Assembly: GCF_052425735.1 (NCBI RefSeq)
Contig: NC_135767.1
Location: 18,042,001 to 18,106,000 of the forward strand
Length of the DNA stretch: 64,000 bases
Reading direction: 5' to 3'
Origin: Oculina patagonica
Taxonomy: Eukaryota
The notes below the pieces were generated by a model. That model made no database searches and was not told the origin of the DNA. It worked only from the letters and a program-made list of their open reading frames with translations. Within the stretch, counting starts at the first letter, position 1. Every line of letters starts with the position of its first letter. A program made the translations under genes and the position numbers. Of the stretch, positions 46,474 through 63,393 are shown one piece after another.

Positions 46474-49400
46474 TTAGAAGTCACCTGACCCAGACCCAGA
46501 TCCCCCATCGGTTGCCACGCACCTTCCCCAGTAAATGTTGCTTGTCGTCTGTTCGCAGAGGGAGCCAGATACACAAGGACATGCTTGTAAAGATTGCTGC
46601 GAAGTAAGATGAGAGTATTACTTAAAGAAAACATGTTTTTTATAAGGCAATTGTAAATTAATGTAGCAACAATGGAAATAGAGCGAGACAGATTACTGAT
46701 CTTTGCCCGGGAGACACCATTTTGACGGAAAAGGCAACCCTTTATTTTTTTATGGCACAGAAATACATATATTTTTTTATCTTTCACATACCCACACAAA
46801 AGAAACCAGGGGCACCTCATCTCTACTTCACTGGTCTGTGGGTTTATTAGAAAATGAATTGAAAGGTTCTTTATAAAGAAATCTAAATAACAGTTTTTCC
46901 TTTCCTTTTCTATACTTCAACTCGTAAAGTTCCTATCCTTTTATATAACTGCAGCATGAAGAAGATCACCCTTTCATATGAAACCTTCCCGTATGGTCCA
47001 CTGTAGGGAGTGCCCCCTTGCCCCCCCACGGGATCTTAGCGATCTTTGTCGAAACTGGCCAGCAAGACCGATATATTCGAGAACAGAATTCCGCTGTTAG
47101 TCAGATTTGTCCTGTCAAATTAGTCAATGTATAAATTTTAGACACTGTTGCGGTGAATTCGTGAGAAAATCTCGTGGTAAAGGCCAGACCGACCGGCTAG
47201 TTCTGACTGATGAAAAGCGCTCTTAGTTAATCTTTCAGTAGTAGTTTCCGATTTTTTTTTTACCTGTAATGGGCACCATCCACGGCCTGGCTTACTCATT
47301 GGCTTACAAAGACCATGTTCATTGTTTCCCACCTTAGCACAGCACTCGTCGTTGTTACATTCTCCGTTATTCATGCAGAATCCTGGTCGTGGTTTGCAAA
47401 ATCCGTCAACACAGTGGTCACCAAGCTTACAGTCATGGATATAGTTGCATTCTCGTTTTTTGCATTTTTCTACAAGAAGACAGCAAATACCATATATTTT
47501 ATTAAATAGACAACTTAGTCCCCAAAGAGCTTTTTAGTAACTTTTTACCTCATTAGTGAACTAACTGTGTAACAATGAAATCTCAAATCTTTGAAATACA
47601 CTTGTGTCTATGGCGAAGGGCTTTTTCGTTTACAATTAGGCCTGTATATCGGCATTTAGCGTGGAATTAGAATTAAGGGAAACGCCGATATTAATTTAAT
47701 TTTTAAAGCGAGCAGCAAGTAGTATTTTTATAAAAAGTTTGAACTTATTTAATTATCTTAAAGGCCTAATTTTCCACTCGACGTAAAAAAATAAATAAAT
47801 CACTTCATTGAAGTGTTAACGTATTTAGCACTGCTGTGCTAATTGAAGGCACCAGGCACTGTAAATAAATGGACAAATATTGTAAATCGAACAGAGACTT
47901 GTTAAATACCCCCAATTGGCAGGATGCCGACCAGTTGGCCGCTTACAAAGCGTGGAGGAGTTGAATTTGGGACCACCGAACACAGTCCATCTAGTGGCAG
48001 GGAGGAGGATTTGAACCCGGAACAAGTCCAGCGCCCTAACCACGAGACCACGCTGCTTCTAACATATAAGAGCCATCTGAGATGGCCTTGAAAAAGGGCC
48101 AGGTTCTAATTTACTGTACAAACCGACACTCACTATCAATGCAAGCGTAGCCAGCTTTACAGTAGCCGTGATATCCGTCATAGCAGTAAGATTCGTATTC
48201 CATGCAGTACCCCGGAGGGTATTCGCAAGCCTGGTTCCCAGGACACTCCGTGTGTTTGATACACTCGCGCTTTTGACAGATGCCACCTTTGCACATATTC
48301 CTAGAGCCACATTCAGCTTGGTGGTAGCATCTTCTTACACCCTTTCTGCAAGCCTGTCGGTATGTGTCGCAGTACTGGTCTTTGGGGCAATGTGCGTGAT
48401 GTGAACATGATCGCTTTACACGGCAATCGCCATTGAGGCAGTAGAATCCATCATAACAGTAACGGTTGCCGCATTTTATCTGAAAGAAAGACAACAAAGT
48501 CAGGTAGAAACGTGAACCACAGCCCAGTCGTAGCACTTATTTATTCTGTTCTCAACGTTGTAAAGCTTAAACTGGATTAATCACATGGGATCAATTTCTT
48601 TCCCAGAACGCAGCGCGCGCTCTCGAGTTCCAGGCTTTTGAGGACAAGATCAGATGAGTTTATCCGTCCTCATGTGAATAGCGAAGGGCGTAAGTGACGT
48701 CCCGACTCTGACAAGACTCAGACAAACAAACCGAAATTGCGGACGATTTTCCTAAAACACTTTCTAAGGCAGCTGGTATTCCTAAAACACTTTCATAAAA
48801 CGAAAACTTCGCCAAGATTCCTTCTATTTCTCTCAGAACACGCTGATGGTTTTTTAAGCCTCGTCCCGGTTATATTCATTTGCATCCTATTTTAAGACCC
48901 TGCGCGCTTTGCTATTCAAGACGATTTATCCGACTTAGACTGATGTTCCGTCCTCAAAATTCGTCTAAAAAAAGGAAAATCGGACGGATAAAATTATCCT
49001 TCTACAATGAATACCGTCCTGTTTTCACACACTAAGACGGATTATCTGTGTTGAACGGATAATCCGTCTAAGACGGATTATTCGTCTCTAGTGTGAAAAC
49101 GGCCCATGTGTTTTTGAGGTTCGGTGATATTCAAAAACTAAATCAATATACAAAACACTTAATTTAAAGCTTTAAGGGAACAGGCTACGTCATTTTAAGT
49201 AATCCTGTTTATTTCCTTTTATTACATGTATTGGCAAAATCAAGCAACCACATCACAAACAAGAATGATTTCCAAATCAATATCAAAAAAACCTGAGGCT
49301 GAGATTGCGAAAATAAATACAGTTGTGCGTTAAATACAATACAGGTACTGTTTTCAGCTAAACAGTACAAAATTCGTCCTTTTTCTACATGGCAAAACTA

Positions 49401-49699
49401 GCCAAGAAACAACAAAGGCAGCAAAACCCGAATGTTTGATACTAATATCATTTCTGAAAGAAGTTATACACCCAAGACATTCTAAAACGGAAATGTCGTA
49501 CGTTATAAAATAAGAATATTAACAAGAAATTTTTCCGACTTAAGAGCATGGGACGGAAAAACAATACTCTTGTAGAAAAATAATGTAAATAGCGACTTAC
49601 ATATCCTCGAGCTAATCCATGGTCTTCTTCTATTTTGATGTCTCCAAAAATAACAACAGCTAAAGATATTAACGTTAAAAATCCTAGAAGAAACTGCAT
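46474..49699 (-). CDS. C1: secreted cysteine-rich protein, 257 aa (six 4-Cys modules + prokineticin/Dkk-CRD2/colipase-like domain + SGSGSG tail); join(49601..49699, 48134..48479, 47264..47469, 46474..46596)
   Basis: All introns GT-AG with phases 0,1,0; 99+346+206+123=774 nt, open frame; signal peptide MQFLLGFLTLISLAVVIFG; 34 Cys; AATAAA at 46405-46410; same structure in two paralogs. Confidence 0.9.
47790..48058 (-). mobile_element. tRNA-derived SINE in C1 intron 2
   Basis: Minus strand GCAGCGTGGTCTCGTGGTTAGGGCGCTGGAC...GGTTCAAATCC (A and B boxes), followed by body and ATTT-type tail. Confidence 0.8.
48690..48830 (+). repeat. Dispersed repeat with an inverted copy at ~50590-50730
   Basis: GACAAACAAACCGAAATTGCGGACGATTTTCCTAAAACACTTTC...CGAAAACTTCGCC versus GGCGAAGTTTTCG...GAAAGTGTTTTAGAAAAATCGTCCGCCATTTCGGTTTGTTTGTC. 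Confidence 0.85.
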
Positions 49700-61700: not shown

Positions 61701-63393
61701 AACCTTATTTTTTCCAGGTTAGCCTAAACAGGTTCTTATATAAATGGTAGTTAACATAAATTTAGGCTATTTAGGTTCTTAATAGGTTCTTATTTTCTGA
61801 AGAAAATTTACATTGATGGTAAAAGAACTTTTAGTGGTATTCGGCCTATTCCTTGTATAAAATTTTCATATCACATACAATGTAAGTGCTTATGCAAAAA
61901 TGAAGCACTATTCGTTTAGAATATGACATTATATACATGCACAGTAATGCTTTGTCCAAACTTATTACCCAGTTGTAAACATTTTCAATCAATTTTAGAA
62001 AATAAAAACCTGTTTCCAAACTGATTTGAGGCTAAATAGGTGTTTATAAAAATGGAGTCTAATTTTCAAATTTTAGCCTAACAGGTTCTTAAATCTTAGT
62101 TTCTTACCCGCGGGTTTTTACTGTGCAATAAATATAGAATAACAAGCAACCATGTATTATTATTTTGTTTGTTTTTTTATAAACATACTAATAACAGAGT
62201 TTTTGACGGTTTTCCGAATGTTGTCCGAAGGTTATACGATCCTTTTTTGAACATTATCTGAAAATTTCCAAAGATTGCTGAAGATTGCCGAAGATCACCG
62301 AAGTTTTCCGAAGGCTTACGAGGAGGTTTCCAAGATGTTTCGACTTTACAACAACAAATTTGAGTAGAAAGGGAAAAGCATGGTATCAAACATAATTAAA
62401 GTCATCGATGTTACCAAAGTGAAAATATAGAAATTTTAAGTGTGTTCAATAACAGTTCTTCACAGGGCTGGAAATCATTGTACAACACTGCAGTTTATAC
62501 AATAATGCAATTTAAAGACCCAGAACGAACCACTATGCATTGCGCGCGTTAATTGGCGTTCGCCATATTTTGTGCGAGTCGATAAGTCCACAATCGTCGA
62601 CAGTGATGAGAAATCCGTTTCCATCGGCCTTACTTTCGGCTTCTAGAACACTTAGAATTATTTCTTGCATTTGGTTGTCGTTATTCCATATCTGGCTGGC
62701 ATTTTTATCGAATTGGTACCTTCATTAAGGAGAAATACATAGTCTATTCTACAGTTGTTGAGATCGTTTAATACGGCCATTGGCCAGGTTCTGATATCAA
62801 TTTTTCTGATTTTTAGCTTAAAAGAACAAAAATTGTAAGTTTTGGACTGTAATATTTTAGAGTTTCTACTGAAACAGTGAGATTGTGCGCGACAGAAAAC
62901 TATCTCATAGAAAACTCAAGCTTGTAGAATATAATTTTTTAATAGTACCTAGTAATATCACATTTTCACTTAGAGCCAAAAATTCGTCGAAAATTTTGCC
63001 ACAAATATCCCAATAAGCGTTTAACAGCTCTCTGGTTTTGGGTTTTTTCGACAATCGTCACATTTGCTCAAGGAAGAAAGTTGCCTTGCGTGTTGTCATG
63101 GTTAATACTCTCATCGACCATAGCTCTCGACTCGGATGAGCGTGAGAAAATTCTTTGTTAACAATTGTCAAAATTAAAAAGGCAGCCTTTTCAAACGAAC
63201 AAGTCGTGCGACAACTTATCGTGGTTACAATAAGTTAAATTGATTGTTAAGCCCACAATTAAAAAAACGATTATTATAAACAATAAATTCTAACTAAGAC
63301 TTCTAGTTACTCTATTATCCTTCTCTTTGTTACCTTTCCGTAGATAACAGCAGTTAATGTTGTCAGCATTAAAAATCCTAAAAGAGTCTGCAT
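58799..63393 (-). CDS. C3: secreted cysteine-rich protein, ~223 aa, paralog lacking module 1; join(63334..63393, 61388..61664, 59729..59934, 58799..58927)
   Basis: Exons 2-4 have canonical sites and an open frame, ending DGGSGSGSGLDDF*; AATAAA at 58729-58734. Exon 1 MQTLLGFLMLTTLTAVIYGK requires the AAG|GTAACA donor (inferred). 60+277+206+129=672 nt. Confidence 0.72.
61681..62123. mobile_element. Tc1/mariner-type MITE abutting the C3 exon 2 acceptor
   Basis: TA-CAGTAAAAACCCG...CGGGTTTTTACTG-TG; internal AGGTTCTTA repeats. Confidence 0.8.

Follow-up and report, generated by a model that had tools for sequence, protein, structure and literature searches.

Introduction

The colipase fold underlies the Dickkopf (Dkk) Wnt antagonists, the prokineticin hormones and many venom peptides, and both the relations among these lineages and the role of the fold in early animals are unsettled. 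Prokineticins need an AVITG N-terminus to activate their receptors. Endocan/ESM-1 and bikunin are small secreted proteoglycans in which one glycosaminoglycan (GAG) site lies beside a cysteine-rich domain. In cnidarians, the nematocyst proteome of the octocoral Eunicella singularis, published in 2025, contains abundant colipase-fold proteins without AVITG, U-GRTX-Esi14-18, which are made as modular multi-domain precursors from five-exon genes; the loss of one exon removes six of the ten cysteines, and hexacoral orthologues were reported (PMC11896702). In the present study, we analyzed a 64,000-nt window of the genome of the stony coral Oculina patagonica (assembly GCF_052425735.1, contig NC_135767.1, positions 18,042,001 to 18,106,000, forward strand), in which three tandem genes, C1, C2 and C3, occupy positions 46474 to 63393 of the window on the minus strand. 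Their predicted products are secreted proteins composed of an array of four-cysteine modules, a single C-terminal ten-cysteine domain and an acidic Ser-Gly tail.

The anthozoan nematocyst colipase-fold proteins (PMC11896702) and the DUF7107 repeat of Pfam are already known; a DUF7107 array joined to one colipase domain and a GAG-type tail is a new architecture within the colipase-fold superfamily. Our literature search found no paper describing the family or its function, and the topics of DUF7107, PEAR1 in Nematostella, and Dickkopf and cnidocytes gave nothing usable.

Gene models, transcription and selection

C1, C2 and C3 were rebuilt from open reading frame (ORF) fragments together with the sequence around each junction, in DNA that is AT-rich and eukaryotic in character. 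Each gene has four exons, all nine introns are bounded by GT..AG, and the intron phases are conserved as 0, 1, 0. The models encode 257 aa (C1, 34 Cys), 252 aa (C2, 34 Cys) and 223 aa (C3, 30 Cys), reproducing the lengths and end coordinates of three paralogs proposed in a first-pass annotation of this DNA, and the cysteine spacings that it had given matched all three rebuilt proteins exactly.

In C1, exon 1 (49601..49699) carries the start codon, a predicted signal peptide and a short acidic linker, and exon 2 (48134..48479) carries five four-Cys modules resembling both DUF7107 and Dickkopf_N (Pfam scores of 24.0 and 21.1 bits, respectively). Exon 3 (47264..47469) encodes the sixth module and the first six Cys of the putative colipase-fold domain, while exon 4 (46474..46596) encodes the last four Cys (CPC-x5-C-x11-C), a DGGSGSGSGDF tail and the stop codon; the 3' untranslated region extends at least to 46319. 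The corresponding exons of C2 lie at 56237..56323 (predicted signal peptide and acidic linker, modeled from a GTAAGT donor and homology to C1), 55413..55755 (five modules, supported by a DUF7107 score of 26.4 bits and the homologous ORFs P0001-P0003), 54177..54376 (sixth module and first six Cys, with an own-genome match at C10:18096168-18096290) and 53304..53432 (last four Cys, an EGGSGSGSGDF tail and the stop codon, also with an own-genome match). In C3, a predicted signal peptide is encoded by exon 1 (63334..63393), four modules by exon 2 (61388..61664; DUF7107 30.3 bits, Dickkopf_N 24.3 bits), the fifth module and first six Cys by exon 3 (59729..59934), which entered the structural predictions described below, and the last four Cys, a DGGSGSGSGLDDF tail and the stop codon by exon 4 (58799..58927).

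Splicing of C1 was followed in run X10, recorded only as probable RNA, alongside three other runs that consist of DNA. A 470-nt X10 contig joined 46596 to 47264 across intron 3 with base-exact precision, its two sides measuring 278 and 192 nt. Across intron 1, a contig joined 48479 to 49601, with a shorter side of 24 nt that falls under the 31 nt advised for the tool. Contig ends fell at both limits of exon 2, 48133/48134 and 48479, and for intron 2 a loose end after 47468 read into the final 30 nt of that exon, showing a one-base difference at the junction that is consistent with a Lys/Arg polymorphism. The X10 contigs were approximately 98% identical to the window, and depth was zero across the non-repeat intron bins of C1. 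One contig (49295-49624) ran unspliced from intron 1 into exon 1 at a depth of 4, versus 155-299 for the spliced contigs, and represents pre-mRNA that was not yet spliced or else a small amount of DNA in the run. The junctions predicted in the first-pass annotation were thereby borne out for all three introns of C1, firmly for intron 3, by the 24-letter overlap for intron 1 and by the loose end for intron 2.

The C3 protein is residue-for-residue identical to P0104, deposited as "hypothetical protein ACROYT_G034015 [Oculina patagonica]", so the C3 model agrees with an independent annotation. The C2 model is based on splice sites that are canonical, a reading frame that stays intact and dN/dS ratios of 0.11-0.19 against its paralogs. 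The family had been called hidden; this may hold for C1 and C2, neither of which was found among database proteins of 123-390 aa, and not for C3, which is publicly annotated, nor for the orthologues annotated elsewhere under automatic names.

The three paralogs are 60-67% identical to one another. Pairwise dN/dS ranged from 0.11 to 0.19 with dS above 1, indicating old copies under purifying selection. Full-length orthologues of the same architecture occur in other corals and in sea anemones, which places the gene models far beyond chance. Selection, splicing and orthology together rule out pseudogenes or chance ORFs.

The C-terminal ten-cysteine domain

In all three proteins the domain follows the pattern C-x5-C-x4-CC-x9/10-C-x9/10-C-x8/10-C-P-C-x5-C-x11-C, whose spacings (5, 4, 0, 9-10, 9-10, 8-10, 1, 5, 11) are the ten-Cys spacing of the colipase-fold superfamily, and all ten cysteines were invariant across 18 copies of the domain. 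Intron 3 divides it so that six Cys lie on one exon and four on the next. When a profile of the 18 copies was searched against the sequences of the Protein Data Bank (PDB), 10 of the 12 matches were to Bv8, Dkk1/2, MIT1, a spider MIT-like toxin or colipase, with the best E-values for Bv8 (0.0055) and Dkk2 (0.0089), and every Cys was in register in the five alignments printed. Single pieces searched against the same sequences returned chance matches only (a tick salivary protein, RNase A and adenosine deaminase).

The structure of the domain was examined as a predicted model rather than an experimental one. AlphaFold2, given residues 141-210 of C3 and the 18-copy alignment, returned a model with a pLDDT of 84.4 and a pTM of 0.62. 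Foldseek placed MIT1 first among PDB entries (E 9.5e-4, TM 0.70) and also returned Dkk1 cysteine-rich domain 2 (CRD2; TM 0.71), colipase, Dkk2 and Bv8. Among the Swiss-Prot models, approximately 28 of the best 30 matches were prokineticins, AVIT toxins, Dkk2/3/4, colipase-like proteins or arachnid venom proteins. An exhaustive VIA-align comparison with 48,161 chains yielded Dkk1 CRD2 at Z 7.2 (rmsd 2.3 over 64 of 70 residues), colipase at Z 6.7 and Bv8 at Z 6.1, while unrelated matches, such as knottins, reached Z 3.1 or less. Protein language-model neighbors of the domain, which we treat only as a lead, fell in Dickkopf and prokineticin clusters with scores of 0.75-0.80, the Dickkopf cluster being the highest at 0.80. 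The assignment of the domain to the colipase fold of the Dkk-CRD2/prokineticin/MIT1 superfamily is well supported by these predictions, and the colipase-fold pattern recognized in the first-pass annotation was upheld by the profile, AlphaFold, Foldseek and VIA-align evidence.

The module array

C1 and C2 each carry six modules and C3 five. Against DUF7107 (PF23416, cut-off 24.6 bits), the exon 2 pieces of C3 and C2 scored above threshold and that of C1 just under it, and P0104 and P0105 likewise carry precomputed PF23416 annotations. Dickkopf_N (PF04706, cut-off 25 bits) matched the exon 2 pieces over the full length of the model at 20.4-24.3 bits, below threshold, and the full-length orthologues at 9.6-15.7 bits. 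The spacing of the modules alternates, which indicates that the true repeat is a module pair of about 48 aa, as long as DUF7107 itself. In the AlphaFold model of full-length C3 (pLDDT 81.7), each module forms a short turn and a beta-hairpin (pLDDT 80-93), and its neighbors in AlphaFold-DB were arrays named "Dickkopf N-terminal cysteine-rich domain-containing", DUF7107, "Tenascin-X" or "squash inhibitor". Sequence matches to the modules in Trichinella and Myxococcota agreed with these structural neighbors. Judged by sequence, the modules are DUF7107.

A module-pair profile searched against solved PDB structures gave mixed chance matches and no Dkk CRD1 (Dkk4 CRD1 was not found), and the modules are therefore not claimed as true homologues of Dkk CRD1. 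A Foldseek search of the full-length model against the PDB likewise returned only generic EGF, TNFR or furin-like arrays for the modules, at low probability.

Predicted secretion and the C-terminal tail

C1, C2 and C3 would be secreted by way of a cleavable signal peptide. After the last Cys, their tails read D/E-GGSGSGSG-(LD)DF, and an acid-flanked GSG follows the last Cys in all 17 family members examined, from Scleractinia to Actiniaria, while the rest of the tail varies (for example DGGSGSGSGDF, EEPGSGSGDFEV, EVPGSGEIDA and PPTEEPGSGxGE). The last 11 residues of C3 are disordered in the AlphaFold model, with a pLDDT of 36-43. An acid-flanked G-S-G fits the xylosyltransferase acceptor consensus for GAG attachment, and the serine or serines of the tail are probably GAG-modified.

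Range of the family and the gene cluster

Only four matches to exon 2 were present in the 529-Mb O. patagonica genome, and all ten genome matches to the ten-Cys domain fell within C10:18088513-18111241; in this genome, the family is confined to one four-gene tandem cluster with the order C4>C3>C2>C1, all on the minus strand. The fourth paralog, C4, lies at C10:18108505-18111535, approximately 2.5-5.5 kb past the end of the window. Its module exon encodes roughly four modules together with the six leading Cys of one colipase domain, while the remainder of that domain, a second such domain and a terminal PPTEEPGSGVGE tail come from two additional exons; exon 1 of C4 was not located in our reconstruction. 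In the public model of this gene, P0114 (ACROYT_G034016), the module exon is translated out of frame.

Relatives were collected by an exhaustive profile search and two word-indexed protein searches, and their names were looked up. Members of the C1-C3 type were found in Porites lutea (XP_073229748, 256 aa, named uncharacterized), Desmophyllum pertusum (P0103, a model that fuses two C1-type copies), Pocillopora meandrina (P0105, partial), Nematostella vectensis (XP_032243306 and XP_048587129, named "platelet endothelial aggregation receptor 1") and Actinia tenebrosa (XP_031562862, named "fibulin-1-like"). C4-type relatives were found in Orbicella faveolata (XP_020603945, named "root-specific lectin-like"), Pocillopora damicornis (P0113, a hypothetical protein at NCBI) and Stylophora pistillata (P0115, named "keratin-associated protein 5-2-like"), and the public model P0081 of Porites lobata fuses a C4-type with a C1-type copy. 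The proposal that the family is lineage-specific was not sustained, as it is not restricted to one lineage and occurs in Porites, Desmophyllum, Pocillopora, Orbicella, Stylophora, Nematostella and Actinia. As far as these sequence relatives indicate, the family is Hexacorallia-wide (Scleractinia and Actiniaria) and uncharacterised.

In P. lutea, the C1-type gene is immediately preceded, on its own strand, by a three-domain C4-type gene, so the order of the cluster is common to Porites and Oculina. Downstream of the annotated P0006 gene, P. lutea has a further C1-type copy (OY283136.1, approximately 16449-17380 of the stretch read, plus strand). One of its exons holds six Cys and another the CPC motif, the latter ending in DGGSGSGSGSEDF, and no gene is called over it. 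The analysis exposed several annotation faults: some copies lack annotation, one model is read in the wrong frame, two models are fusions, and some automatic names are misleading ("PEAR1", "fibulin-1-like", "root-specific lectin-like" and "keratin-associated protein").

Comparison with described systems

The proteins share with prokineticins, Bv8 and MIT1 the ten-Cys pattern C-x5-C-x4-CC...C-P-C-x5-C, with MIT1 as the top Foldseek match and Bv8 as the top profile match, and the intron between Cys6 and Cys7 would match prokineticin gene structure. They differ from them in lacking AVITG(A) at the mature N-terminus. Their domain begins approximately 140-180 residues into the protein, behind about 150 aa of modules, and the residues P-G-F precede its first Cys; the Pfam prokineticin model also stays under its cut-off. 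The statement in the first-pass annotation that these are not prokineticins was confirmed by the internal position of the domain and the missing AVITG.

The resemblance to Dkk1/2/4 and Dkk3 is one of layout, as these proteins are likewise secreted and carry an N-terminal Cys-rich region followed by a C-terminal ten-Cys colipase fold. The Cys register is that of Dkk1/2 CRD2, and Dkk1 CRD2 was the best solved structural match. Unlike Dkks, which have one ten-Cys CRD1, the family has five or six four-Cys modules in that place; it carries a C-terminal GSG tail; its C6-C7 loop is 7-8 residues shorter than those of Dkk1 and Dkk2 in HMMER alignments; and the "HFW" stretch that follows the CC pair in Dkk1 is not conserved. 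The LRP5/6-binding surface of Dkk CRD2 presumably comprises its extended C6-C7 loop and the aromatic and basic residues that follow the CC pair. By their sequences, C1, C2 and C3 are not canonical Dkks. The earlier view that the architecture fits neither group was right to that extent, but the DUF7107 modules are near Dickkopf_N, and a CRD1-like region followed by a CRD2-like domain echoes Dkk more than had been claimed.

As described in the original publication, the octocoral proteins U-GRTX-Esi14-18 resemble the family in being cnidarian, in having a colipase fold without AVITG and in arising from multi-domain precursors, and their exon split of six and four Cys is that of the C4-type gene and of intron 3 in C1, C2 and C3 (PMC11896702). 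They differ from C1, C2 and C3, which have a single colipase domain behind a DUF7107 array and no inter-domain dibasic sites. The DUF7107 repeat proteins, which include nematode proteins misnamed "Tenascin-X" or "squash inhibitor" and proteins of Myxococcota, are built from the same paired four-Cys hairpin module, but form long arrays without a colipase-fold domain or GSG tail, and none is of known function. Like endocan/ESM-1 and bikunin, the family combines a compact disulfide-rich body with a terminal acidic Ser-Gly motif, here a candidate acceptor; there is no sequence or fold relationship between them.

The family defined here is conserved in hexacorals and joins a colipase fold to a repeat array near Dickkopf_N and a likely GAG site, and its cluster adjoins multi-colipase genes that resemble the published octocoral nematocyst proteins. 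It provides a testable set of genes, including manipulable Nematostella orthologues, for asking whether the ancestral role lay in signalling, venom or matrix.

Proposed function and alternative explanations

We propose that C1, C2 and C3 are intact, constrained tandem genes for secreted, GAG-modified extracellular binding proteins with a DUF7107 rod and a colipase head, placed tentatively on the cnidocyte route, and we put the probability of this combined explanation at roughly three in four. The protein would be a non-enzymatic binding protein in which five or six modules, locked by disulfides into a stiff rod, present the colipase-fold head to a partner, either a protein or a membrane. One or more serines of the C-terminus would bear a chain of the chondroitin or heparan type, making the product a small secreted proteoglycan. 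Its setting may be the cnidocyte or venom secretory route, a suggestion drawn by analogy with the octocoral nematocyst colipase-fold proteins.

Several results weigh against this proposal. No Prokineticin, Colipase or Dkk C-terminal Pfam model reached threshold on the exon pieces or the full-length orthologues, and the prokineticin model (PF06607) scored 10.8 bits versus its cut-off of 21.6. The profile matches to solved colipase-fold proteins were individually marginal, with E-values of 0.0055 to 0.9. The designation of X10 as RNA is itself a guess, and the transcript evidence that it provides is for C1. The case for GAG attachment is the tail motif itself, and the likeness to the octocoral proteins was drawn from published descriptions rather than from sequence alignment. 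No obvious dibasic cleavage sites were found between the domains of family members, all dibasic pairs lying inside modules.

The cell type and mode of action could differ from those we propose. The proteins could be nematocyst or venom components, packed into cnidocysts intact or after processing and serving either a toxic function or a structural or matrix function in the capsule. The octocoral nematocyst proteins, with their multi-domain precursors, missing AVITG and hexacoral orthologues, point this way, as does the neighboring C4-type gene, whose two or three tandem colipase domains, each split into six and four Cys, match the published description (PMC11896702). The best structural neighbors of the domain also include scorpion, spider, lizard and mamba venom proteins. 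Weighing on the other side are the missing inter-domain dibasic sites and a comparison with the octocoral proteins made by description only, and the dN/dS of 0.1-0.2, a mark of purifying selection, is uninformative here; we regard a nematocyst component as possible, though well short of an even chance. A divergent Dickkopf-type Wnt modulator, whose CRD1-like modules and CRD2-like domain would bind LRP5/6 and/or Kremen, appears unlikely. It would account for Dickkopf_N-like modules (20-24 bits versus the cut-off of 25) standing before a C-terminal colipase fold, for the Z of 7.2 with Dkk1 CRD2, for the top language-model cluster (score 0.80) and for the UniRef name of one C4-type orthologue, "Dickkopf N-terminal cysteine...", but Dickkopf_N stayed under the Pfam threshold, the module profile found no Dkk CRD1 among solved structures, and the C6-C7 loop is 7-8 residues short of those in Dkk1/Dkk2 and the "HFW" stretch is not conserved. 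Cnidarians already possess canonical Dkk genes, which further counts against a Wnt modulator.

A proteoglycan of the skeletal organic matrix or another extracellular matrix, produced by calicoblasts, would suit the acidic GSG tail motif, the cysteine-rich rod and the origin of the sequence in a stony coral. We consider it quite unlikely, as the family and its tail are conserved in sea anemones without a skeleton (Nematostella and Actinia), a distribution that rules out a skeleton-specific role as the ancestral one. The least probable explanation is a prokineticin-like ligand of G protein-coupled receptors (GPCRs), possibly of those whose genes are arrayed next door. The fold is common to Bv8 and the prokineticins, and intronless 7tm_1 receptor genes, arrayed in tandem, fill the window from 1 to 43 kb, but AVITG is lacking and the mature protein does not begin with the domain. 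Coral genomes often contain large receptor arrays, and the adjacency is therefore probably a coincidence; at the P. lutea locus, the gene upstream of the cluster encodes a kinase, and no receptor gene is called in the 23 kb read. A receptor ligand of this kind is highly improbable.

Returning to the proposed rod-and-head proteoglycan, a more speculative extension would make the family an anthozoan class of GAG-bearing Dickkopf-like proteoglycans. These might help to scaffold or load the matrix of the cnidocyst, perhaps serving as a core protein for nematocyst chondroitin, or might present the colipase head to an LRP-type receptor. This extension is a long shot; if true, each of these roles would link the stinging organelle of cnidarians to the origin of the Dkk/prokineticin fold.

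Other features of the window

The rhodopsin-type receptor genes form a tandem array at 2963-42630 on both strands, with at least six full-length intronless ORFs of 302-343 aa: one on the plus strand (2963-3994) and, on the minus strand, those at 12803-13732, 16855-17799, 30216-31163, 39171-40079 and 41716-42630. Truncated copies lie at 5797-6222, 8220-8849, 20477-20926 and 35075-35737. Two of the ORFs were tested against Pfam and matched 7tm_1 with E-values of 4.5e-24 and 2.8e-20.

Between C1 and C2, a 154-aa ORF on the minus strand (52248-52712) had no Pfam match at E 0.001 or better and is possibly the tail of a retroelement protein. A minisatellite is suggested nearby at 51825-52170 by overlapping ORFs on both strands with repetitive peptides ("...RYFRDL..." and "...AALFSGF..."). 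Just downstream of C1, a tRNA-Thr-like sequence (46226-46301, plus strand) is embedded in an extremely high-copy repeat (surroundings 45900-46350; summed contig depth to approximately 7e5 in the DNA runs), which is probably a tRNA-derived short interspersed element. Further high-copy repeats occur in the introns of C1 at approximately 46957-47258, 47712-48164 and 48618-48919.

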